Below are positions 2,139 through 63,467 of a stretch of 64,000 nt of DNA, in pieces. Position numbers and translations under genes: made by a program. The notes beneath the pieces were generated by a model. That model had not been told where the DNA came from, ran no database searches, and saw only the letters and a program-made list of their open reading frames with translations. The stretch spans positions 248,001 through 312,000 of the forward strand of contig NIVC01000014.1 in the NCBI GenBank assembly GCA_002269645.1, written 5' to 3'. The stretch is from Macrostomum lignano. Its lineage: Eukaryota. How positions within the stretch are numbered: the first letter of the stretch is position 1; the number at the start of each line of letters is the position of its first letter.

Positions 2139-5100
2139 ATGTCAGTGCTGAGCAGTAGCACAAGCAGTGACTCCCACTTGGTACCATCTTCTGAGCCATC
2201 TGACGAAGCTCTACTCACCTTGGCTGAGAAGCGCGAAAGCTCAGGTGGTCCTGGGGACGAGTACGAACAGGCCAGGGAGGAGCTGCTCAGGTATCGTCTA
2301 CACGAGCGGCACCGAGATTTCATCGACTATAGCGGCTTGAAAGTGTTCTGCGGCACCTGGAATGTTAATAATCAATTTAGCGAAGCCGAAGATCTCACTA
2401 AGTGGCTGCAGTGCGCAGATTCTGCTCCAGATATCTATGCTTTAGGATTTCAGGTAACTGGGAGCGGGGATTATCGGCTCTAGCTGGGAGCTTAGTTCAA
2501 TACTATAGGATTAGCTGCTTGAGCTGAATAAAACAATGGGTGATTGGTGCAAGCAACGTATAATGAATGTACTTAGAGACTGGACTATAAGCCTTAAAAA
2601 ATCTAGTGGCATGGGGATTAGCAGCTCCTTAATGAATGGATTAGCAGCTCTTTAGTGAATGGATTAGCAGCTTCTTAGTGAATGGATTAGCAGCTCTTGA
2701 GTGAATGGATTAGCAGCTCCTTAGTGAATTGATTAGCAGCTCCTTAGTGAATTGATTAGCAGCTCTTTAGTGAATTGATTAGCGACTCCTTCGTTAGCGG
2801 GGATTAGCAACTAAGACCTTAGTGACTATTTGAATAAAAGTTGCAAATCGATCAGCCAAACGTCACTCCCCCAAAATCCTTAAATCAGGAGCTGGACATG
2901 TCCACTAGAAACTACTTATCAACCTACTGCTCCGAGCGTCAGACGCGCTGGTGCGAGCTGTGCCGAAAAGCATTCGCAAACAGCAAAGATTATAAAGTGC
3001 TGAAAACTGTGAAGCTGTTCTCCACTCTGTTAATGGTTGCGGTTAAGAAAGATCTCATTAGTGAGGTTCGCAATTTGAAGTGCGGCGCTCAGGCCACCGG
3101 TCTGATGGGTTTCATGGCTAACAAAGGCGGCACTGCCGTGCGATTTCAGCTGCATGACACTTTGCTCACCTTTGTCAATTGTCACCTGGCTGCTGGGGAG
3201 GAAAAACTCGAGAGGCGCTATGAAGATTACAAGGTGGGTTCGAATTTGTGTTTTGGTTGGTAATGCAAGGTTATTTAAAGGATTGAAAGCTACACAAGGT
3301 ATCTGGTGTCTGAAATACCTGAGAGGTGCATTAGGGTATCTGGTGTCTGAAATACCTGAGAGGTGCATTAGGGTATCTGGTGTCTGAAATACCTGAGAGG
3401 TGTATTAGGGTATCTAGTGTCTGAAATACCTGAGAGGTGCATTAGGGTATCTGGTGTCTGAAATACCCGAGAGGTACATTAAGGTATCTGGTGTCTGAAA
3501 TACCTAAGAGGTACATTAGGGTATCTGGTGTCTGAAATACCCGAGAGGTGCATTAGGGTATCTGGTGTCTGAAATACCCGAGAGGTACATTAGGGTATCT
3601 GGTGTCTGAAATACCTGAGAGGTGTATTAGGGTATCTGGTGTCTGAAATACCCTAGAGGTGTATTAGGGTATCTGGTGTCTGAAATACCTGAGAGGTGTA
3701 TTAGGGTATCTGGTGTCTGAAATACCTGAGAGGTGTATTAGGGTATCTGGTGTCTGAAATACCTGAGAGGTGCATTAGGGTATCTGGTGTCTGAAATACC
3801 CGAGAGGTACATTAGGGTATCTGGTGTCTGAAATACCAGAGAGGTGTATTAGGGTATCTGGTGTCTGAAATACGCGAGAGGTACATTAGGGTATCTGGTG
3901 TCTGAAATACCCGAGAGGTACATTAGGGTATCTGGTGTCTGAAATACCTGAGAGGTACATTAGGGTATCTTGTGTCTGAAATACCTAAGAGGTACATTAT
4001 GGTATCTGGTGTCTGAAATACCTGAGAGGTGTATTAGGGTATCTGGTGTCTGAAATACCCGAGAGGTGCATTAGGGTATCTGGTGTCTGAAATACCCGAG
4101 AGGTACATTAGGGTATCTGGTGTCTGAAATACCTGAGAGGTGTATTAGGGTATCTGGTGTCTGAAATACCCTAGAGGTGTATTAGGGTATCTGGTGTCTG
4201 AAATACCTGAGAGGTGTATTAGGGTATCTGGTGTCTGAAATACCTGAGAGGTGTATTAGGGTATCTGGTGTCTGAAATACCTGAGAGGTGCATTAGGGTA
4301 TCTGGTGTCTGAAATACCCGAGAGGTACATTAGGGTATCTGGTGTCTGAAATACCAGAGAGGTGTATTAGGGTATCTGGTGTCTGAAATACCCGAGAGGT
4401 ACATTAGGGTATCTGGTGTCTGAAATACCTGAGAGGTACATTAGGGTATCTTGTGTCTGAAATACCTAAGAGGTACATTATGGTATCTGGTGTCTGAAAT
4501 ACCTGAGAGGTGTATTAGGGTATCTGGTGTCTGAAATACCTGAGAGGTACATTAGGGTATCTGGTGTCTGAAATACCTGAGAGGTACATTAGGGTATCTG
4601 GTGTCTGAAATACCTAAGAGGTACATTAGGGTGTCTGGTGTCTGAAATACCTGTCGTTACCTGAATTCAGCTGTCTGAGAATCTCACACCTTATATTTCT
4701 ATTCTCAATGAGTATCTCTCCTCTTACATTTCTGATCTTAATGAAAATCTAACTTTTTAGATTTCCAGTCTCAATGAGAATCTCACCCCTCAGATTTTCA
4801 TATCAAAATTTAATTCTTAACTACACAGAGATAGAAGTTCTGTTTATAAAATATTCTGCAATGTACAATTTGTAATGCTCGCAAAACTGATCAACTGCAC
4901 CATAAATGAGATAGTTTAGACTATCCCTCTGAAGCATATTTAATATGTAAGTCTGCGATGATTACATTATCTACTCAGAGTCTGTACAGGCTAATAAACA
5001 CGAACTTTATAAAGTATTTATAAAGCGATAAATTACATTTTTGTTCTGTCTCTATACGTGCCCCCGTTTGATCAATAGTTGTCTTAATGTGTACAGCAAG

Positions 5101-8100: not shown

Positions 8101-11100
8101 GTGAATTTAATCATTAGGGTGTCATCTCTAGTTACTAGTAAGTAGTATATTTGGTCATGATTGATTTGGTTATTAGCTGATAAAAGTCCTTTACTATCTA
8201 GCCGATATGTATCGAAACAACAAATAACCAACTGTAGATAAGCTTCGGCCAGGTGGCTTTCTTCGAAACCTACGAGACCGGCGTGTCCTTGCGCAACACT
8301 GGCCGCGTCCCGGTGCGCTGGCATTTCAACGGCAGCGACGCCTTTGGCGGCGACACTTGCCCGGCTTTTATGCGGCTGACGCCAACCACGTCTAGGATTG
8401 ACGTGGACTCGCAACAGTCAATCAAATTGTCGTTGTCGTTGAAGGACAGGCACATTGCCGAGGCGATGCGCCGGTGGGCCGAGGAGCAGCCTAATCCGGT
8501 GTTCAGACCAGAGGACATCCTTGTTGTGGTGAGTCTGGAATCCTGAGAATCTCATACCAGAATCTCACATCAGGATCTCATACTAGAGTCTTACATTAGA
8601 ATCTCATACTTGAGTCTCATACAAGAATCTCACATCAGGATCTCATACAAGAATCTCACATCAGGATCTCATACAAGAATCTCACACCAGAATCTCGCAT
8701 CAGGATCTCATACAAGAATCTCACATCAGAATCTTACATCAGAATCTCACATCAGAATCTCACATCAGAATCTCACATCAGGATCTCATACCAGAATCTG
8801 ACATCAGGATCTCATACTAGAGTCTTACATTAGAATCTCATACTTAAGTCTCATACAAGAATCTCACATCAGAATCTCATATTAGAGTATCATGCAAGAA
8901 TCTCAGATTAGAATCTCGTATTAGAGTCTCATACAATAATCTCTGTTTAGAATCTCATATTAGAGTCTCATACAAGAATCTCACATCAGAATCTCACATC
9001 AGAATCTCACATCAGGATCTCATACAAGAATCTCACATCAGGATCTCATACAAGAATCTCACATCAGAATCTCACATCAGAATCTCACATCAGGATCTCA
9101 TACAAGAATCTCACATCAGGATCTCATACAAGAATCTCACATCAGGATCTCATACAAGAATCTCACATCAGAATCTCACATCAGGATCTCATACAAGAAT
9201 CTCACATCAGGATCTCATACAAGAATCTCACATCAGAATCTCACATCAGGATCTCATACAAGAATCTCACATCAGGATCTCATACAAGAATCTCACATCA
9301 GGATCTCATACAAGAATCTCACATCAGGATCTCATACAAGAATCTCACATCAGAATCTCACATCAGGATCTCATACAAGAATCTCACATGAGGATCTCAT
9401 ACAAGAATCTCACATCAGAATCTCACATCAGGATCTCATACAAGAATCTCACATTAGAATCTCATATTAGTCTCATACAAGAATCTCACATCAGAATCTC
9501 ACATCAGGATCTCATACAAGAATCTCACATCAGGATCTTATACAAGAATCTCACATCAGAATCTCACATCAGGATCTCATACAAGAATCTCACATTAGAA
9601 TCTCATATTAGTCTCATACAAAAATCTCATCGAATCTATTAAAAAATCCCAGGCGCTGTCACCCCTAACACTGCCTCCCCTCCCTGCAGGTGCTCACTGG
9701 CGGGAAGCACTTCTTCCTCATACCACAGGCGGATCTGGTGCCCACCTGTTTCGGCCTGCCACTCGCCGTTGCCTGCCGACTCGCCCGCCCGGTGTCCCGG
9801 CTCGAACCTGACGACCTTCGAGCGGCCATCCGGCTGGCCTATCGCCGTGGCTCGGCCGCGGCGACTGGCGAAAATCCGGACAAATACGACGACGATGTAG
9901 AGAGCGTTTCGGCCAGTTTCGGACAGTTGCCGGGTGGGTGGATTGGGATTTGTGCGTGGATTGGGATAAATGTGTTGAGGATATCCCATAGGTATAAGTT
10001 GGTAGGGGATATCTCATAGGGTATTATTTGTAGGGATATCCCATAGGGATAAATTTGTAGGAGATATTCCATAGGGATAAATTTGTAGGAGATATTCCAT
10101 AGGGATAAATTTGTAGGAGATATTCCATAGGGATAAATTTGTAGGAGATATTCCATAGGGATAAATTTGTAGGAGATATTCCATAGGGATAAATTTGTAG
10201 GGGATATTCCATAGGGATAAATTTGTAGGAGATATTCCATAGGGATAAATTTGTAGGAGATATTCCATAGGGATAAATTTGTAGGAGATATTCCATAGGG
10301 ATAAATTTGTAGCGGATATTCCATAGGGATAAATTTGTAGGGGATATTCCATAGGGATAAATTTGTAGGGGATATTCCATAGGGATAAATTTGTAGGGGA
10401 TATTCCATAGGGATAAATTTGTAGGGGATATTCCATAGGGATAAATTTGTAGGGGATATTCCATAGGGATAAATTTGTAGGGGATATCCCATAGAGATAA
10501 GTTGGTAGGGATATCCCATAGGGATAAATTTGTAGGGGATATTTTATTGGAATGATTCTAATACTCAGGATAACACAAAGAACATTCAAGGTGCTATGGT
10601 ATCTGTGGATCTTGCGGATAGATATAATTATTCCCCTGGATCAACCTCTTCCCACTCCCGCATACTCAGGCTTCCTAACCGAGCCGCAGCCGCTTCCACG
10701 CGAGGTTGTCCGCCTCATCCGTCACATCCGCCGGCACCACCTGACTACTCAGGACCTGCTCACGGACGTGACCAATACCGAAGAGATTCTGCGCTCCGCT
10801 GAGCTGCTTACATCCACAGATCTGATGGACGAACTGCCGTTAGAGTCCATTGCCGGCAAGTCCTACCTGCAGACTCTGTTTGTCTATTTAGAGTGCCTGC
10901 CGGATTCGTTGTTGCCCGAGCCCGGCTCACCCCTGGCCGCTAATCTGCTCTGCTTGGTACTGGATTTGGCCCAGGTGATTTTTTATCATTTATTTATTCC
11001 TCATCTGATCTCTTTTTTACTCGTTTTTAGACCTTCAGTGCTTGACCCGCCCTATTTCCGCCCCTTCCCTTGCTTGACCCGCCCTATTTCCGCCCCTTCC

Positions 11101-11707: not shown

Positions 11708-11841
11708 GGCCCTCTACTGTGCGTGTATAGTAATGCACTAGCTGTGTCTCTCTGCCCTTTTATTCACTCCATTGTGCTTTGTTAGCGCTGGGCTGTCGAT
11801 ATTCTCAATTCCTCAGGTTATCCATCCTGCCAGGTCCTTGC

Positions 11842-12950
11842 GGGCCAGCCTCTCAGATCCTCAGTTGCTGGGCCAGCCTCCCAGATCCCCAGTTGCTGGG
11901 CCAGCCTCCCAGATCCTCAGTTGCTGGGCCAGCCTCCCAGATCCCCAGTTGCTGGGCCAGCTTCCCAGATCCCCAGTTGCTGGGCCAGCCTCCCAGATCC
12001 TCAGTTGCTGGGCCAGCCTCCCAGATCCCCAGTTGCTGGGCCAGCTTCCCAGATCCCCAGTTGCTGGGCCAGCTTCCCAGATCCTCAGTTGCTGGGCCAG
12101 CCTCCCAGATCCCCAGTTGCTGGGCCAGCTTCCCAGATCCCCAGTTGCTGGGCCAGCTTCCCAGATCCCCAGTTGCTGGGCCAGCTTCCCAGATCCTCAG
12201 TTGCTGGGCCAGCCTCCCAGATCCTCAGTTGCTGGGCCAGCCTCCCAGATCCTCAGTTGCTGTGCCAGCCTCCCAGATCCTCAGTTGCTGGGCCAGCCTC
12301 CCAGATCCTCAGTTGCTGGGCCAGCTTCCCAGATCCTCAGTTGCTATGCCAGCCTCCCAGATCCTCAGTTGCTGTGCCAGCCTCCCAGATCCTCAGTTGC
12401 TGGGCCAGCCTCCCAGATCCTCAGTTGCTGGGCCAGCCTCCCAGATCCTCAGTTGGTGTGCCAGCCTCCCAGATCCTCAGTTTCTGGGCCAGCCTCCCAG
12501 ATCCTCAGTTTCTGGGCCAGCCTCCCAGATCCTCAGTTGCTGGGCCAGCCTCCCAGATCCTCAGTTGCTGGGCCAGCCTCCCAGAGTGTCAGTTGCTGGG
12601 CCAGCCTCCCAGAGTGTCAGTTGCTGGGCCAGCCTCCCAGATCCTCAGTTGCTGGGCCAGCCTAGCTCCCAGATCCCCAGTTGCTGAGCCAGCCTCCCAG
12701 ATCCTCAGTTGCTGGGCCAGCCTCCCAGATCCTCAGTTGCTGGGCCAGCCTCCCAGATCCTCAGTTGCTGGGCCAGCCTCCCAGATCCTCAGTTGCTGGG
12801 CCAGCCTCCCAGATCCTCAGTTGCTGGGCCAGCCTCCCAGATCCTCAGTTGGTGTGCCAGCCTCCCAGATCCTCAGTTGCTGGGCCAGCCTCCCAGATCC
12901 TCAGTTGCTGGGCCAGCCTCCCAGATCCTCAGTTGCTGAGCCAGCCTCCC
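11842..12950. repeat. 28-bp minisatellite (gggccagcctcccagatcctcagttgct), ~39 copies, just 3' of the OCRL stop
   Basis: gggccag at 11842, 11870 and onward; source of several repeat ORFs in the track. Confidence 0.97.
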
Positions 12951-13644
12951 ATTGTCAAAAATCTAGCTTGGATTTGTTTTGGTGATTCAATGTCTCTTCC
13001 TCCTGGGTTTTATCCATCATTCCTATCTATTCAGTTTCCATGTGCCAGCTGTGAGCAACTACTACTACTACTTTCCAGTTGTAAGTAAGCAGTTGCGCTT
13101 GAATATTGAATCGCAGATGAATCTGTTTGAAATCGAACACTTCTTCAGTCGTGAACATTAGCAGGTGTTTAGAATGATACCTTGTTTCAGTGAACTCGTT
13201 TTGGCCTAATCAATATTAGAACCAATTTTTCTATGCTTATATTTGTATATTTTAATTGATAAACATTCTCTATTACAACTGTAGGTGTAAGCAGGGTTAA
13301 TTAGTAGGTTTCTTACTTTTGAAAAATTACTCGAAAATAATCTGGTCTCGCTATAACTAATAAGCTATGGGCTTTGTATGTTGTGAATGATCTGAAAAGT
13401 ATTTTTACGAGCAAGCTTTGTTTGTACACACACACAAAAATGGTATATAGATATACTTTATCTTTATATGAAGACATATTAATTAAAGCTAACTCTGCTT
13501 TAGATATCGTAGTATAAAGCTGCCTTATGACATTTTTTCATTTAAGTTTCTAAAGTTTCTAAAGCTGAAGTTTCTACTTTATGCTCCGTAGTTTCACGCT
13601 CCAGCACTCAACAACTTTGATATGAACCTACGCACACTACCCAC

Positions 13645-18741: not shown

Positions 18742-20682
18742 TCACTTCGAACAAGGAGCGGACAACGACGAGGTTCCAGACTTGACGGACAGAGCCGAAC
18801 CGTAGGTGTCTTCGCGCCTCAACGACGATGACCTCGACGTTGATGAAGAAGTAGCGGCCAGCAGCAGTCTCGGCCCGCCGACCAGACGGGCAAGTCGAAG
18901 TCGGAACGACTTTCGCAGGTAGGGTGCGCTCATGCCATAGGTGAAAATGTTAACGGCATTGTGCAGCAGCATGACAAAATGGGTCGCGTGGATCCAGTAG
19001 TTGAACAATGTTCCATTGCCATTGTTCAACTCATCCGTAACGTCGTAGTAGTTGATGTTCTGCGATCGGAACGCTTCGATCATCTGGACGACGGTGTTCG
19101 GAGCGGTGAAGGCTAGGAAAACGCAGGACACGCCGATGAGCGAGCCGAACGACTTGTCGTCAACGCAGTAGCCGCTTCCTCTTGACAGTTGTCGAAGGTG
19201 TCTGGTTCTGAGCGCGATCAGGGCGCAGTTTCCGGCCAGGACCAGCAGCAACGGAATTACCGGGAACACCAGAGCCAGCCACATCTTCTCCAGGCCGTAG
19301 GAGAAGACTGTAGATTCGTATCGCCAGCACTGGATAAAGAAGTCCGAGTCCAGAACTACGAGACGGTAGCGAGTGAACAGCAGCGGACTGCACATGGCCG
19401 CTACGAGAACTATGAGGCCTAGGATGAGCAGGCGGTGGACTCGTCTAGAATAGAGCGAATGCCAGAACGGTCTAACCAAGGTGGCCAGCTTAGTGTAAGT
19501 CAGCGCAACCACCAGCCAAGCTACGGATCCGGCTGTGAAGATCTCAAAGAATGGAATCAACTTGCAGGTGAGCTGCGACGCCTCCTGAGCGAAGATGTCG
19601 AAGTAGAGCGACAAGATAATTGGTAGCAGGTTGCACCACAGACAGAGCAAGTCAAGCACTGAAAGAGCCAGGAAGTACATGCAGCTGATGCTCTCGGACA
19701 GGTTTACCAAGCTGAACAGCAGCGCAATCAGGTTGCTCACAGTTCCGATGAGTAGCAGGATCGGATAGCCGTATCGGATTAGTTGAGCCACGGCGCTTAG
19801 CTTGCCAGGCAGGGAAGCCTCGAAAGTGGGATTAATCCACATCCTGTTGGGAATTCTGAGCGCGTCGAAATGGCCAAATATGATCAGCTCGATGAATTCG
19901 ATAATCCGATGAGTTGTATTGTAATAGTCGAAGTTACCGCTGCGAGCGACGTGCGAGAGTAACTTGTACTGTAGTACAGAGGTCATGCTGTCGTGATGCT
20001 GACTGCTGCTCTGGCTGTTCGGGTTGCCTCGGGCCAGGTCTTCGAGTTCGCAGCGCGGGCGAAGCAGCAGCCTCGGATCCGACAGCTGCATCAGGAGGGT
20101 TTTGCGACAGTCTGGCGGTACGTCAACCTCGGGCAGGCAGCTTTTAGCGAAGGTGTACAACGTCTCAGCGGTGCGGTCGCCCGAGTGTCTGAGAAGGTTG
20201 CTGTAGGTGACGTAGGGCTGCCCCAGCTGCAGGTAGAGCCTCACGTAGACAAACAAAAACGGCTTGGTGTCGCCGCCGCGAAGGCTCTCGATGACAAAGT
20301 CCATGAGCGTTATAGTGAGCTCCTGCACAGTGGGATAGTTGCTGCCGAATATCAGGCTAGGATAAACTCGAAAATGGCACAGCACATTGTAGTCGCTCAT
20401 CTTGATGCCTTCAAATGCTTGGTTGAACGTTTCAAACAGTTTACTGCGCAGGGTGAACACCAGCTCTGAGAATTGCCGGTATTCGTCTTGCTCCATGACT
20501 TTGACGTACTTTTTCAACTCATTGAGCAGGTGGATCACCTCTGGACGAGTCATATTTCTCTCCGGCAAGTGGTTAAGCATCGCATGAGTTGACTGCGGAA
20601 GCTGCGAGCCGCCTGATGCAGCCACCAGCGGCAGTGCAAGCACCGCAATCAGTAATCTAATTGATGCCAGAATGGAATTCAT
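18742..20682 (-). CDS. Intronless class A (rhodopsin-like, peptide-receptor type) GPCR with signal peptide and long N-terminal ectodomain, 646 aa
   Basis: True ATG with an upstream in-frame TGA; hydrophobic leader MNSILASIRLLIAVLALPLVAA. Seven TMs: GYPILLLIGTVSNLIAL (TM1, N1.50), MYFLALSVLDLLCL (TM2, LxxxD), CKLIPFF..AWLVVALTYTKL..RPF (TM3), TM4, VFPVIPLLLVLAGNC (TM5), VSCVFLAFTAPNTV (TM6), LLHNAVNIFTY (TM7); Ser-rich tail. Confidence 0.92.
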   Translation of the reverse strand: MNSILASIRLLIAVLALPLVAASGGSQLPQSTHAMLNHLPERNMTRPEVIHLLNELKKYVKVMEQDEYRQFSELVFTLRSKLFETFNQAFEGIKMSDYNVLCHFRVYPSLIFGSNYPTVQELTITLMDFVIESLRGGDTKPFLFVYVRLYLQLGQPYVTYSNLLRHSGDRTAETLYTFAKSCLPEVDVPPDCRKTLLMQLSDPRLLLRPRCELEDLARGNPNSQSSSQHHDSMTSVLQYKLLSHVARSGNFDYYNTTHRIIEFIELIIFGHFDALRIPNRMWINPTFEASLPGKLSAVAQLIRYGYPILLLIGTVSNLIALLFSLVNLSESISCMYFLALSVLDLLCLWCNLLPIILSLYFDIFAQEASQLTCKLIPFFEIFTAGSVAWLVVALTYTKLATLVRPFWHSLYSRRVHRLLILGLIVLVAAMCSPLLFTRYRLVVLDSDFFIQCWRYESTVFSYGLEKMWLALVFPVIPLLLVLAGNCALIALRTRHLRQLSRGSGYCVDDKSFGSLIGVSCVFLAFTAPNTVVQMIEAFRSQNINYYDVTDELNNGNGTLFNYWIHATHFVMLLHNAVNIFTYGMSAPYLRKSFRLRLARLVGGPRLLLAATSSSTSRSSSLRREDTYGSALSVKSGTSSLSAPCSK

Positions 20683-21387: not shown

Positions 21388-21783
21388 CAGGGGCGTCGCC
21401 ATGGATTTTATGGTGGGGGGGGGGCAAAGCCAAGAATGACTAAATTTTGGCACTCATTTTAGCGCCGCAGGCACTCATTTTAGCGCCGCAGGCACTCATT
21501 TTAGCGCCGCAGGCATTCCTTTTAGCGCCACAGGCACTCATTTTGGCGCCGCAGGCACTCATTTTAGCGCCGCAAGCACTCATTTTAGCGCCGCAGGCAC
21601 TCATTTTTGCGCCGAAGTCGCTATATTTTGGCGCCCTGAAAAAAAATTATTGATTACCACAACGGCTCACAAGGTGGGGTGAAGGGGGGGGGGAAAAAAC
21701 ATTGGCATGTTCCCCCAGAGCTTTTACTGGGGGACATTGGCTGGCCCCCCTGTCCGTCCCCCCCCCCGGTGGCGACGCGCCTG
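21388..21783. mobile_element. 396-bp hAT-type MITE with 14-bp TIRs, perfect 8-bp TSD (gccataga) and an internal 21-bp minisatellite
   Basis: TSD at 21380-21387 and 21784-21791. TIR CAGGGGCGTCGCCA versus CAGGCGCGTCGCCA on the opposite strand (13/14). gcactcattttagcgccgcag repeated ~9 times at 21450-21635. An 8-bp TSD with CAG ends is the established hAT signature. Confidence 0.88.
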
Positions 21784-22753: not shown

Positions 22754-22990
22754 GGCTGTAGCCCAGTGGTCAGAGCGTCGGACTCACGACTTGAAGGCCG
22801 GGGGTTCGATTCCCGACCCCACTCGGAACAATTTGTGTTTTTGAGCAAGACACTTAACTCTGCGTTCTTCAGTTCACCCAGCTGTAAAATGGGTGCCAGC
22901 ATTAGCTGGGGGTAATTGAGGGTGTGTGTGGCGTAATGTAGTTTGCATGCACGTCTTCCCATCAGGGCAAGTGTAATCAATTATTATTAT
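22754..22990 (+). mobile_element. tRNA-derived SINE with CORE-like central domain, copy 1
   Basis: A box tagcccagtggt and B box ggttcgattcc. The segment gagcaagacacttaactctgcgttcttcagttcacccagctgtaaaatggg resembles the MIR/CORE domain; (tta)n tail; second copy at ~43065. Confidence 0.85.
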
Positions 22991-33748: not shown

Positions 33749-36700
33749 TCAACACATCGATGATGAGGCATCCAGCAGCCGCACAGCCACTCTTCCCTGC
33801 TCCTTGTCGGCGTTGCCGCCCGTGACTGTGACGCAGCCGCTGCCGCCGATGCAGGCGGAGCCGCCGCCTCCTCCAGCGTGGCCGAATCCGAGACCCGCTC
33901 CGCCTCCGCTGAAGCCACCACCGGCGCCAGGAGCTCCTCTTGTGCCGCTAGCGCTGCCGCCACCGCCGCCACCGCCGCCGAATCCGCCGTTGCCGCCACC
34001 GCCGTCGCCGCCGCTGCCGCCGACCCAGCCGTCGGCTACGCTGCCGCCTCGCTCTCCGTCGGTGTTGCCTCGTCTCGGGTTGACGGCCTTGCCGAGCCAG
34101 CCGGCACCGCAGCCGCCGTGGATGTAGCCGGACCCAGTGCGGCTCGGAGTGTTGGAGCCCGGGGCTCCGTTGGTTCCGCCTAAGCCAGAGAGGCGGGAGT
34201 GCTTGCCAATCGTGTCCGAACCGTTGCGTCCGGACTCACCAGGCAGTCCTGTTGTTTGCGTCATTTTATTGGCTTGAGTACATGTCAAACTTGTACTGTT
34301 GGTGTGACATGTAGTATTGCAGAATGTAAAATTCTCAAATTTCCTGTTTAAATTTATCACTGGAAGCACAATACGCTCGTAAAAGTTTCAACTAACGCTT
34401 AAACAAGAAGTGAATTTCACTCTCTAATCCCACATAGCACTTTGGGCACACTCATCTTATACAAGTACACAATACACAGGTGAGCATTGATTATCAACTT
34501 AACTATAAGAATTTCGCTCGCCAAATGGCTAATTTTGCAAAAAGTACATCTTAAGTGGACGTTCACCTCAGACGTCCTTGCCATGAACGAGTATTTTAAA
34601 AGGTGGTATAGTTAGAAACTCGACTGTTGAAACACAAAAGCGGGCCTGTACGTCTGTGGCAAAAACCCCGAGTTCGGGAAGCTCACCGTTTCCACCAGTG
34701 GCGCCACCGCCACCGCCGCCCGCAGCCAGCAGCAGCCGAGTCTCCGATCCGTCGCTTGTCCACACGAAGCTGCCGCCGCCTCCGCCAGGCGCAGCGCCGT
34801 TCACCGATTCGTTGCTGCCCGCCTGTCCGACGGCGATGTCCAATCGGATTCCGGCCGTCAGACTGAAGTTGGCAGCCGCGGTGGCTCCGTGGCCTCCGAC
34901 GGTGCCTTTGGACAGCTTGCTGCCGCCTCTGGCTCCGGCGGCCTCGATGCGGTAGCAGCCGGTGAGGCCGATCTGCAGGTGCTGGACGGACCCGCTGCTG
35001 CCCGTGGACAAGTCTGTAATTAACAACGCGTCAAAAATAGGCATTCTGATCTCAGCTGCATCCAATCCATTACATATCGAATAAGCTAAAGGAAGGATTG
35101 CATGCAGGTAATACCAACTGCTCACTCTTGAACACGACATCGAGCCTGTAGGCCCTCTCTCGGATTAGCTGCTCACCCGGCGGTAAAAATCACGTCGAAA
35201 TGACGTCGATATTCGCCTTTTAAAGACTATCGCCGAATTAGTTGTCGGTTGAACCTTCATTCGACGTCGAAATTTCGATATGAATTATTTTATCTTCTCA
35301 TTAGCCAAATATATCATTTATGATATTTTACAATGTTTTCTTCAACGTGATTGCGATTTTACAAAATTGACCTAAAAATTCAGTACAACAGAGGTTATAT
35401 TTTTTGTTTTAACTCAGCGCTAGATACGCGCATTTTTTAAAAATATCGCCATGCGATGTCGATTTATTATTTTTGATGCCTAACTTATATACATAAATGT
35501 TTAACTTATACTTCTGTATTACGCATGGCAGCTTCTTCCTTTCAATGCATTTTTTATATTTGTGGCTGTATTAATGTGTGATTGTGTGTCATAAATTGTG
35601 TGTATAATTTGGTTTAACATAATATTGCTGCCTAGAGTTTTAATCGTTTATATATGTATAAGCGAATCAATAAAGTAGCCATAAATTTTTTATTGTTTGT
35701 TTTGCTGCCATTGCTGTTAATTATCTTTCCAGTCAAGAGGAACAACAAAGATAATTGTTCATTTTCCTCTTTTATTTGCTTTGCTGTTATTGTTACTTCT
35801 CATTTTTTATTTCACATTTTACATTTTTGAGTGTAGTTCTAGTTAGACTCAATATCATCTTTTGTCCATTATGTCATGCTTTTGCTAGTTCTTTATCAAG
35901 GTCAAAATTGCAGAAAGTAAAGAAGTTGTAGTTTGTGTTTGTAGCATATGCTCATAGTTACAGTAAAAACTAAATTGCAATGGCCAAATAATTGCTGAGC
36001 TCTAAGCAAAAGAAGAAATAATTAAAATAAAGACTGATAGAATAAATATATTTAGTATGTAGTTTTTATAATTGCTTATAAACCCTACCATTCTTTAGTA
36101 TGATGCTATTAGATGTATGTAGTTTAGTATATCAGAGCAGACCATTTTTAGTATATATATTTTGAGATTAGAGATTTAGTATAGGTGCATTTATTATATT
36201 TAGATGTTGCCATTGATTAAGTGTAACTACTGTATTAAATGTATACTCTGTTGCCATTGCGTGTATCCGTGTATCATTGCTCACAGTTTTTCATCGTTTT
36301 TTTCTCATCGTTGCTTTCTGTTCGCAATTGCTGGATGCCGATTTCCATGATCGTTTCCAATTGCTGCTGAATTGGAATTGAATACACGGTACTATACTTT
36401 TTTCATGGTTGCAAGATTATTGCAATTTGCGCGGATAGCAAATGAAACGTCAGCCCTAATTAGCATTTTTATGCCTTAACACTTCTTTTACTGCTTAGAG
36501 TATTTCAGCGTATGAGTTATAAAACTTATGTTCCGTCAGCTGTAAGTTACGTACATGTAGTTTATGGCTAATTGTATGAAACATTGCTATAGCATATTAA
36601 TAATATTAAGTACTAGTATTAACAGCCATAATATTAAAATCGAAAATTTGTCGAAAATCGCCATTTGCTTTCTGTGATCTACGAGTATAAACGACGTCGA

Positions 36701-37224
36701 TTTTTCGCCATCAATAGTGGAAAACACGACGTCGCATACTCGACATCTGATGGCGAAAATTTCGACGTCGAAATCGTGGTTCAAATCGACATGAAATTTC
36801 GACGTCGCTTTTCGACGTCATTTCGACGTGATTTTTACCGCCGGGCAAGGTTGGCCACCGTCCACATGGATTCGTCCGCCTCGGAACCGAGAACTCGCGT
36901 CACGTGACTCGCCGTCGGTCCCAGAGACTGCGACGCATCGTTGATGACGACGAGCTGGCAGGTGGAGGTGCTCTTAGGAACGACTGCCACAGCGCAGCCT
37001 CTCGCTCGGCACCTGAGCAGACAGTCGGGCACCGAAGCGACGTTGGTCTCGGTGATGACGTCACTGCTCACAGTCGGATCGAGCGAGACGGGCAGGGCCG
37101 AGCGGACGAGACGCTTGCAGCTGGGCGAAGTTGTCTGCGGCATCCGCGATGCAGCAACTGCAGCGAGGCAGCAGAGCATACAGAGCCTCAGCCATAGTTT
37201 GAGATCGTCAGTCAATTCCAACAT
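33749..37224 (-). pseudogene. Secreted protein (signal peptide + PAN/apple-like segment + ALK/LTK-type glycine-rich domain) with exon 1 interrupted by a transposon; 417 aa if the element is removed
   Basis: Exon 1a 37224-36846, exon 1b 35173-35126 (donor a|gtgagc), exon 2 35013-34687, exon 3 34248-33749; the phases close to 1254 nt. Motifs: LCMLCCLAAVAA leader, DCLLRCRARGC..C (PAN-like), YRIEAAGARGG, AVGQAG, GGGGGSFV, LLLAAGGGGG, GGFGGGGG, GGGFSGG. The element introduces TAA three codons after the insertion point. Confidence 0.8.
35176..36845. mobile_element. 1670-bp non-autonomous DNA transposon with perfect 34-bp TIRs (CCCGGCGGTAAAAATCACGTCGAAATGACGTCGA) and 2-bp TSD (CA); probably CMC/EnSpm (CACTA)-like
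   Basis: TIRs at 35176-35209 and 36812-36845; CA on both flanks (35174-75, 36846-47); repeated subterminal cgacgtcg palindromes; AT-rich interior with no convincing ORF. The superfamily call rests on my recollection that animal CMC elements have CCC ends and 2-bp TSDs. Confidence 0.9.
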
Positions 37225-37694: not shown

Positions 37695-37955
37695 AAACCT
37701 GCGGGAAAACCTCGCTGCGGGAAAACCTCACTGCGGGAAAACCTCGGTGCGGGAAAACCTCACTGCGGGAAAACCTCACTGCGGGAAAACCTCACTGCGG
37801 GAAAACCTCACTGCGGGAAAACCTCACTGCGGGAAAACCTCGCTGCGGGAAAACCTCACTGCGGGAAAACCTCACTGCGGGAAAACCTCACTGCGGGAAA
37901 ACCTCACTGCGGGAAAACCTCGCTGCGGGAAAACCTCACTGCGGGAAAACTCTGC
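37695..37955. repeat. 16-bp minisatellite (gcgggaaaacctcact), ~16 copies
   Basis: gaaaacc at 37801, 37817 and onward; one inverted copy (aggttttcccgcagg) at ~37494. Confidence 0.95.

Positions 37956-42174: not shown

Positions 42175-63467
<21,293 letters not shown>

Follow-up and report, generated by a model that had tools for sequence, protein, structure and literature searches.

What remains of a gene when a DNA transposon settles inside its first coding exon? This question is raised by 64,000 nucleotides of the flatworm Macrostomum lignano (contig NIVC01000014.1, positions 248,001 to 312,000; hereafter the window, in whose own coordinates all positions are given), where a gene on the minus strand, coding for a PAN-like domain followed by a glycine-rich domain (GRD) of the type known from the ALK and LTK receptors, is split by a 1670-bp element bounded by terminal inverted repeats (TIRs). 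Our favoured reading, to which we give a probability of about 0.8, is that a young non-autonomous TIR insertion has produced a null or truncating allele of one PAN-GRD paralogue. The features that carry the argument are the following, in the order of the gene.

36846-37224, minus strand: upstream part of coding exon 1, starting at the ATG at 37224, with a signal-peptide-like N-terminus and the PAN-like domain
36847-36846, minus strand: first copy of the target-site duplication, TG, the last 2 bases of the upstream part of exon 1
35176-36845, no strand assigned: non-autonomous TIR transposon, 1670 bp, 32% GC
36812-36845, minus strand: TIR at the gene-upstream end (CCCGGCGGTAAAAATCACGTCGAAATGACGTCGA), holding the in-frame TAA at 36837-36835 and the GT at 36838-36837
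36696-36811, no strand assigned: subterminal region with repeated (C)GACGTCG(AAA) motifs, with a shorter counterpart at 35210-35275
35176-35209, plus strand: TIR at the gene-downstream end, identical to the other arm at 34 of 34 positions
35174-35175, minus strand: the other copy of the duplicated 2-bp target site, TG here and CA on the plus strand
35126-35173, minus strand: downstream part of coding exon 1, ..EQLIRERAYRLDVVFK, then the donor A/GTGAGC, phase 1
35014-35125, minus strand: intron 1, 112 bp, GT-AG, phase 1
34687-35013, minus strand: coding exon 2, first half of the GRD, YRIEAAGARGG ... GGGGGSFVW ... AAGGGGGG
34249-34686, minus strand: intron 2, 438 bp, GT-AG, phase 1
33749-34248, minus strand: coding exon 3, second half of the GRD and the conserved C-terminus ..GRVAVRLLDASSSMC, with the stop TGA at 33751-33749

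The ends of the element are precisely defined. The window contains CCCGGCGGTAAAAATCACGTCGAAATGACGTCGA at exactly two places, inverted with respect to each other (36812-36845 on the minus strand, 35176-35209 on the plus strand), and no such pair appeared in 100 shuffles even when 3 mismatches were allowed. On the minus strand the flanks read ...CCAACCTTG/CCCGG...CCGGG/TGAGCAG, with TG directly repeated (CA on the plus strand); around the whole insertion the gene strand thus reads CCTTG/element/TGAGC. By itself a 2-bp direct repeat has a chance of 1/16, and the duplication is credible because the reading frame is restored when it is reduced to one copy and because paralogues match across the resulting joint. 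The initial annotation, which had described a 1670-bp element with perfect 34-bp TIRs and a CA duplication inside coding exon 1, is therefore upheld at 35176-36845. The presumed pre-insertion site, CT-TG-AG, is palindromic around the duplication in this single case.

Inside these ends there is little. No open reading frame (ORF) longer than 65 aa lies wholly within the element, and none longer than 80 aa overlaps it on either strand, the truncated ORF of the host gene (129 aa) excepted. Its sole internal structure is provided by the GACGTCG motifs of the first ~150 bp and the last ~100 bp, where 7 of the entire window's 12 GACGTC sites are found; the motifs are presumed to be transposase-binding sites. 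Fully matching TIRs, a TG duplication backed by frame restoration and the lack of a transposase give the element the anatomy of a non-autonomous class II TIR transposon with subterminal sites, as judged from its sequence, and an autonomous partner elsewhere would mobilise it. Neither a TIR search nor BLAST of the element found a further copy or fragment in the window, BLAST against 22 kb of M. lignano sequence gave chance matches only, and 22 nt of the TIR had no match in a scan of Joint Genome Institute metagenomes. There were likewise no Rfam and no tRNA matches in the window, on which ground we reject an origin of the element from a structured RNA or a tRNA.

Read on the minus strand from the ATG at 37224, the gene proceeds to ...WTVANL and the opening base of the codon that follows, and then enters the element as CCCGGCGGTAAAAAT..., that is, Ala-Arg-Arg-stop (TAA 36837-36835). 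When the element and one TG are removed, the joint becomes AAC CTT G/AG CAG CTA, and splicing of 35126 to 35013 and of 34687 to 34248 yields 1254 nt coding for 417 aa with no internal stop. The 417-aa ORF that the initial annotation had reconstructed with phase-1 junctions is thereby recovered in full. Searched back against the window by tblastn, this product matched the four coding blocks only. The joint WTVANL/EQLIRERAYRLDVVFKNLSTG aligns without gaps with the M. lignano proteins P0005 (WKVADFEQTVQQRQLKNLTVVLSNSSTG) and P0003 (WKVSDLQKLLNDRKYGNFVFKNSSTG), so that the sequence following ANL, on which the earlier interpretation had staked its gene model, is read straight through by two paralogues. 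In BOX15_Mlig009354g1, an annotated M. lignano gene (PAA78312.1, locus L001), the exon is uninterrupted at the insertion point, and both introns lie at the same alignment positions and in the same phase 1 as in the window gene, with flanks ..VVFK/N-SSTG and ..PG/MDG in PAA78312.1 against ..VVFK/N-LSTG and ..NG/LPG here. The read-back to the window, the gap-free joint in paralogues and the shared intron positions are three independent results that support the gene model.

The gene bears no other lesion: its 1254 nt are open, canonical sequence is found at all four splice sites, and the family's invariant residues are kept. Its paralogues stop at the same C-terminal motif, and no additional membrane-anchor or kinase exon is therefore expected. 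In agreement with this, no transmembrane segment or kinase follows the GRD, no kinase was matched in Pfam and the ORF ends at TGA 33751-33749, 14 residues past the GRD, which bears out the earlier description of the protein as lacking both. An allele free of the insertion is predicted to be ~1.67 kb shorter and to read ...AACCTTGAGCAGCTA... at this place.

We propose that a cut-and-paste TIR transposon recently entered the linker-coding part of exon 1 in one paralogue of a lineage-expanded family, with a duplication of 2 bp (TG as the gene is read) and with a TAA that comes up three codons inside it. In the protein the insertion falls between PAN and GRD, in the linker immediately after the final strand of the PAN model (residues 118-123). 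Without splicing, the allele would make at best a 128-aa fragment consisting of the signal peptide, the PAN domain and ARR, and its mRNA would likely be removed by nonsense-mediated decay, because the premature stop lies upstream of two introns. As many paralogues are present, the loss is probably tolerated. We infer both that the insertion is recent and that the allele has lost its function. The recency already put forward in the initial annotation finds support in the perfect TIRs and in the rest of the gene, whose intactness indicates a young insertion, but the age itself is only loosely bounded: the 72 unchanged sites of TIRs and duplication set a 95% limit of <~4% neutral divergence. The insertion is probably polymorphic or limited to one haplotype or subgenome, a polymorphism that the age bound does not itself demonstrate.

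Several points weigh against this interpretation. The 2-bp duplication, the family and the mobility of the element all depend on one insertion, that is, one element copy; the perfect TIRs are compatible with any age below ~4% divergence; the case is known from one filled allele and from genomic sequence alone; and cryptic splicing could keep the frame, since 14 of the 176 nearby pairs formed by 16 GT and 11 AG restore it. The most direct challenge is a rescue of the gene by splicing, with the element as an intron in the making. In this scenario the TIR donor GCG/GTAAAAAT (GT 36838-36837) would be joined to the AG at 35156-35155, resulting in a near-normal 413-aa protein with ..ANLARRAYRL.. and in a hypomorph or a switch instead of a null. 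That this pair keeps the frame (..NLARRAYRL..), as the initial annotation had noticed, is correct, and it meets no stop; moreover, a M. lignano paralogue uses the octamer GTAAAAAT as its actual intron-2 donor, and intron-generating transposons are documented in many eukaryotes (PMC12130899). We nevertheless regard the rescue as unlikely. With that many frame-restoring pairs, which is no more than chance would give, one such pair is expected by chance, and the acceptor that the proposed pair requires is GAG/G after the purine-rich AATCCGAGAG, whereas 4/4 verified acceptors of the window gene and of a M. lignano paralogue are CAG after T/C-rich or A-rich tracts. The best acceptor, CAG 35171-35169, just past the ATTTTTACC stretch of the TIR, shifts the frame when used with the TIR donor and leads to a stop at about codon 130, and the first AG after the element (35173) likewise causes a frameshift and a stop at about aa 130. 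The element has no AG at its 3' end and hence no 3' splice site of its own, and the survey of introners mentions no flatworm (PMC12130899). An exonic donor, ACG/GTGGCC (36858), keeps the frame too when joined to the same CAG (411 aa, with 6 residues lost, TVANLEQLIR becoming TLIR) and also when joined to the AG at 35173-35172 (412 aa, 5 residues lost). Because this exonic donor works equally well, a rescue would need no sequence of the element, and the TIR is not special in this respect.

A bolder version of the same idea holds the element to be the first sighted copy of an active, unclassified lineage of macrostomid DNA transposons, characterised by ends of the form CCC...GGG, a duplication of 2 bp other than TA and subterminal sites with GACGTCG, and removed from the transcript through cryptic sites, either the GTAAAAAT donor of the TIR or the exonic donor with the CAG just past the T-rich end. 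If true, this would show, in an animal, a transposon on its way to becoming an intron, but we consider it quite improbable. There is also a slim chance that the gene was already a dispensable, decaying copy within a family that is large and perhaps polyploid, in which the insertion would be a neutral hit on a pseudogene-to-be. The M. lignano paralogous family is indeed very large, and M. lignano and its relatives are neopolyploid, with haplotypes assembled separately (PMC10733133, PMC10468722); what speaks against prior decay is the intact state of all 1254 nt, of the four splice sites and of the invariant residues. Finally, the extreme repeat richness of the window might suggest an assembly error in which some repeat was attached to the gene by mistake, yet such a mis-join would not yield exact inverted ends within a 2-bp direct repeat and, once these are taken out, a conserved frame, which makes an artefact barely credible.

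On the favoured reading, a recent insertion that disables one paralogue, the case is a modest one, an ordinary knock-out insertion, which would leave current understanding unchanged unless results on the element's family or on splicing bring a surprise. The locus illustrates cleanly how the recent arrival of a DNA transposon disrupts an exon in a flatworm genome. Since the element is probably still mobile, it is relevant to genome instability and possibly to tool-building in Macrostomum models; the features of its ends fit no common superfamily. The locus also brings to attention a large uncharacterised family of secreted proteins with PAN and GRD domains in flatworms and corals, so that the cytokine-binding module of ALK and LTK is in wide use outside receptor kinases.

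The identity of this module is well supported. Taken alone, the product of exon 2 scores 31.8 bits (E 1.9e-7) against Pfam PF12810 (ALK_LTK_GRD), above the gathering cutoff of 24.5 bits. A scan of the full 417-aa protein against Pfam gave no match, probably as an effect of the composition correction. The fold of this domain family combines a TNF-like part with polyglycine-II helices, and glycine runs of 5-8 occur in the reconstructed protein. A profile of 61 family sequences compared with the Protein Data Bank (PDB) found ALK (7nx3) at E 1.8e-18, LTK (7nx0) at 1.6e-10 and Caenorhabditis elegans SCD-2 (7lir) at 1.8e-10, and is collinear with the ALK structures over ~300 residues; the single window sequence reached only E 0.26 against the ALK/LTK structures. 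The glycine-rich module is, by these profile matches, an ALK/LTK-type GRD, as first annotated, and its ligand binding is putative. The vertebrate ALKAL ligands are not expected here.

The N-terminal domain is more divergent. It scores 14.1 bits (E 0.044) against Pfam PAN_1, below the gathering cutoff of 21.4 bits, so that of the Pfam check proposed for the reconstructed protein only the GRD part succeeded, through the exon-2 piece. A homologous unit of the M. lignano protein P0123 (592-689), aligned with it at E 2e-9, does pass PAN_1 with 23.5 bits. An exhaustive phmmer search with the domain in 1.84 billion representatives returned 10 relatives, 9 of them from M. lignano and most with a GRD after the domain. 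The AlphaFold2 model that we accepted, based on a 17-sequence alignment, has a predicted local distance difference test (pLDDT) value of 78 (83-91 in the core); an earlier model from 9 sequences had a pLDDT of 55 and a meaningless Foldseek output. With the accepted model, the top 24 Foldseek matches in the PDB were all PAN modules, namely the HGF N domain and the plasminogen PAp domain, with E values from 3e-3 to 0.1 and probabilities of 0.89-1.0, at least 0.95 in 23 of the 24. The best example is the HGF N domain 3hms (template-modelling score 0.60, probability 1.0), and below the top 24 came the apple domains of SML-2, Wsc1, Kremen and prekallikrein. Cysteines at positions 68, 72, 77 and 91 follow the PAN pattern C-x3-C-x4-C ... 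C. We accept the domain, as modelled, as a divergent PAN fold, which agrees with its original designation as PAN-like. Its N-terminus (LWLRLCMLCCLAAVAAS) and the N-termini of the paralogues resemble signal peptides, and the proteins of the family are predicted to be secreted.

The combination of the two domains had been called unusual, a view that we do not share. The top 12 matches of our homology search are all M. lignano proteins with the PAN-then-GRD order, which is found in ~30 M. lignano database entries when cluster members are counted and again in stony corals; by these domain assignments the architecture is common. Members of the family share ~35-50% identity. The homology search found no near-identical database protein for the interrupted gene, and exact-product look-ups of 6 ORFs of the window (the truncated ORF, the 646-aa ORF described below, two exon ORFs and two in the element) had no match. 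The suggestion that the protein might act as a decoy for an ALK ligand found no support: a family so large and divergent looks more like one of extracellular binding or structural proteins. Our survey of the literature on PF12810 and on secreted GRD proteins found nothing relevant. GRDs that stand alone or carry other decorations abound among metagenomic and bacterial proteins, such as a Crocinitomix protein sorted by the type IX secretion system (T9SS).

The names given automatically to family members in UniProt are heterogeneous ('Apple domain-containing', 'WSC domain-containing', 'PE-PGRS' or the misleading 'receptor protein-tyrosine kinase'). The last was assigned to many of the kinase-less M. 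lignano GRD entries, which include P0007, P0009, P0127, P0128 and P0123 among others; P0008 is named 'Protein kinase domain-containing', and Pfam finds in it a GRD only. P0123 is a 2348-aa model with two PAN-GRD units fused to IFT140, probably a gene-model fusion.

The rest of the window is saturated from 1 to 64000 with minisatellites, made of 12-65-bp units in 10-120 copies with 83-97% identity (35 rows with a score of at least 200 in Tandem Repeats Finder), for example at 3298-4653, 8546-9630, 11838-12951, 45638-48015, 53345-55121, 55518-56804, 57176-58277 and 61032-62524. These arrays generate most of the long 'ORFs' of the six-frame list. At 37699-37950, ~475 bp upstream of the ATG of the interrupted gene, a 16-bp unit (CTGCGGGAAAACCTCA) is repeated in tandem (15.8 copies, 96% identity). 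Some repeats are common to the window and the M. lignano contig NIVC01000695.1 (L001 4622-5221 and 9125-9355) at 71-91% nucleotide identity: a 21-bp minisatellite with its flank at 21449-21783 (80-91%) and a repeat at 43094-43360 and 22771-22857 (71-84%). One repeat on NIVC01000695.1 lies directly upstream of the M. lignano PAN-GRD paralogue. Together with the close relatives of both domains, all of which are M. lignano proteins, these repeats serve as a taxonomic clue and place the window in a macrostomid flatworm, M. lignano or a congener.

Three other coding regions were recognised. Downstream of the interrupted gene, on the minus strand, 18742-20682 is an intronless ORF of 646 aa whose N-terminus is signal-like and whose C-terminal half contains several hydrophobic segments, so that it may encode a membrane receptor; it had no Pfam match and no relative in a word-indexed protein search. 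Upstream of the interrupted gene, on the plus strand, an integrin-alpha-like gene (42690-63467) spreads its exons over ~20 kb with minisatellite-filled introns, from a GAP-like N-terminal exon at 42690-42974, through FG-GAP repeats at 49959-50441 (E 4.9e-15), to a transmembrane segment and cytoplasmic tail near 63003-63467; the word-indexed search found no relative of the FG-GAP exon. Also on the plus strand, 2841-3263 is an exon for part of an Exo_endo_phos2 domain of the inositol-polyphosphate-5-phosphatase type (Pfam E 7.8e-23).

Among the known superfamilies of DNA transposons, several could be set aside. Tc1/mariner (ITm) elements need a TA duplication, and this element has TG/CA; piggyBac needs TTAA, and the flanks here are CTTG and TGAG, despite the CCC..GGG termini; hAT, Mutator, P, Merlin and Transib would leave a 5-9-bp duplication, which the flanks lack. 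A 2-bp duplication other than TA therefore excludes Tc1/mariner, piggyBac and all superfamilies with 5-10-bp duplications. With a single copy and no transposase, the element is left unassigned to a superfamily.

Comparison with known systems helps to situate both the element and its host gene. Target-site duplications measure 0-4 bp for PHIS (PIF/Harbinger-ISL2EU-Spy) and 2 bp for CMC-Mirage/Plavaka, and piggyBac ends are 5'-CC..GG-3' (PMC10045372, PMC12730594). The 2-bp duplication of the element falls within the PHIS range (PMC10045372), a match of duplication length without a transposase. It is also compatible with 2-bp CMC lineages, although the ends of the element are neither TGT.. nor CAC.., the lack of CAC being the reason why we set CMC aside. 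With piggyBac it shares the CCC...GGG ends but not the duplication, TG/CA instead of TTAA. More generally, it resembles the non-autonomous TIR transposons with short duplications in its TIRs, its subterminal motifs, its lack of coding capacity and its 2-bp duplication. Like introners, it bears TIRs, sits in a coding exon and has a plausible 5' splice site near one end. Typical introners carry their own 3' splice site (PMC12130899); unlike them, the element has none, its strongest sites predict no precise in-frame removal, and many intronic copies are not in evidence.

The protein belongs to the same domain family as the GRDs of ALK and LTK (PF12810; PDB 7NX3, 7N00, 7LS0, 7NX0) and of SCD-2 (7LIR), with the runs Y.I.A.GA.GG, GGGGGSFV, AAGGGGG, GGCGAGW and GGFGGGGGG. 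Unlike these receptors, it lacks a transmembrane segment, a kinase and modules of the MAM, LDLa or EGF type, and its GRD is preceded by a PAN domain. In the stony corals Porites harrisoni (P0033) and Pocillopora verrucosa (P0047), secreted, kinase-less proteins have PAN_1 and then ALK_LTK_GRD, each scoring above its Pfam cutoff (31.9 and 34.3 bits in P0033, similar values in P0047). These proteins, which occur with or without EGF modules, differ from the window protein in the EGF or COLFI-like modules between the domains, belong to another phylum and show ~40% identity in the GRD only. Closest are the M. lignano relatives A0A1I8GEH1 (P0003), A0A1I8HRN4 (P0001) and PAA78312.1/BOX15_Mlig009354g1 (P0129). 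At ~35-50% identity they are paralogues or distant orthologues, and none is interrupted at the insertion point, but they present the same order of signal peptide, PAN-like domain, short linker and GRD, the same C-terminal motif G.V.V.L....C and the same layout of three coding exons as the window gene.

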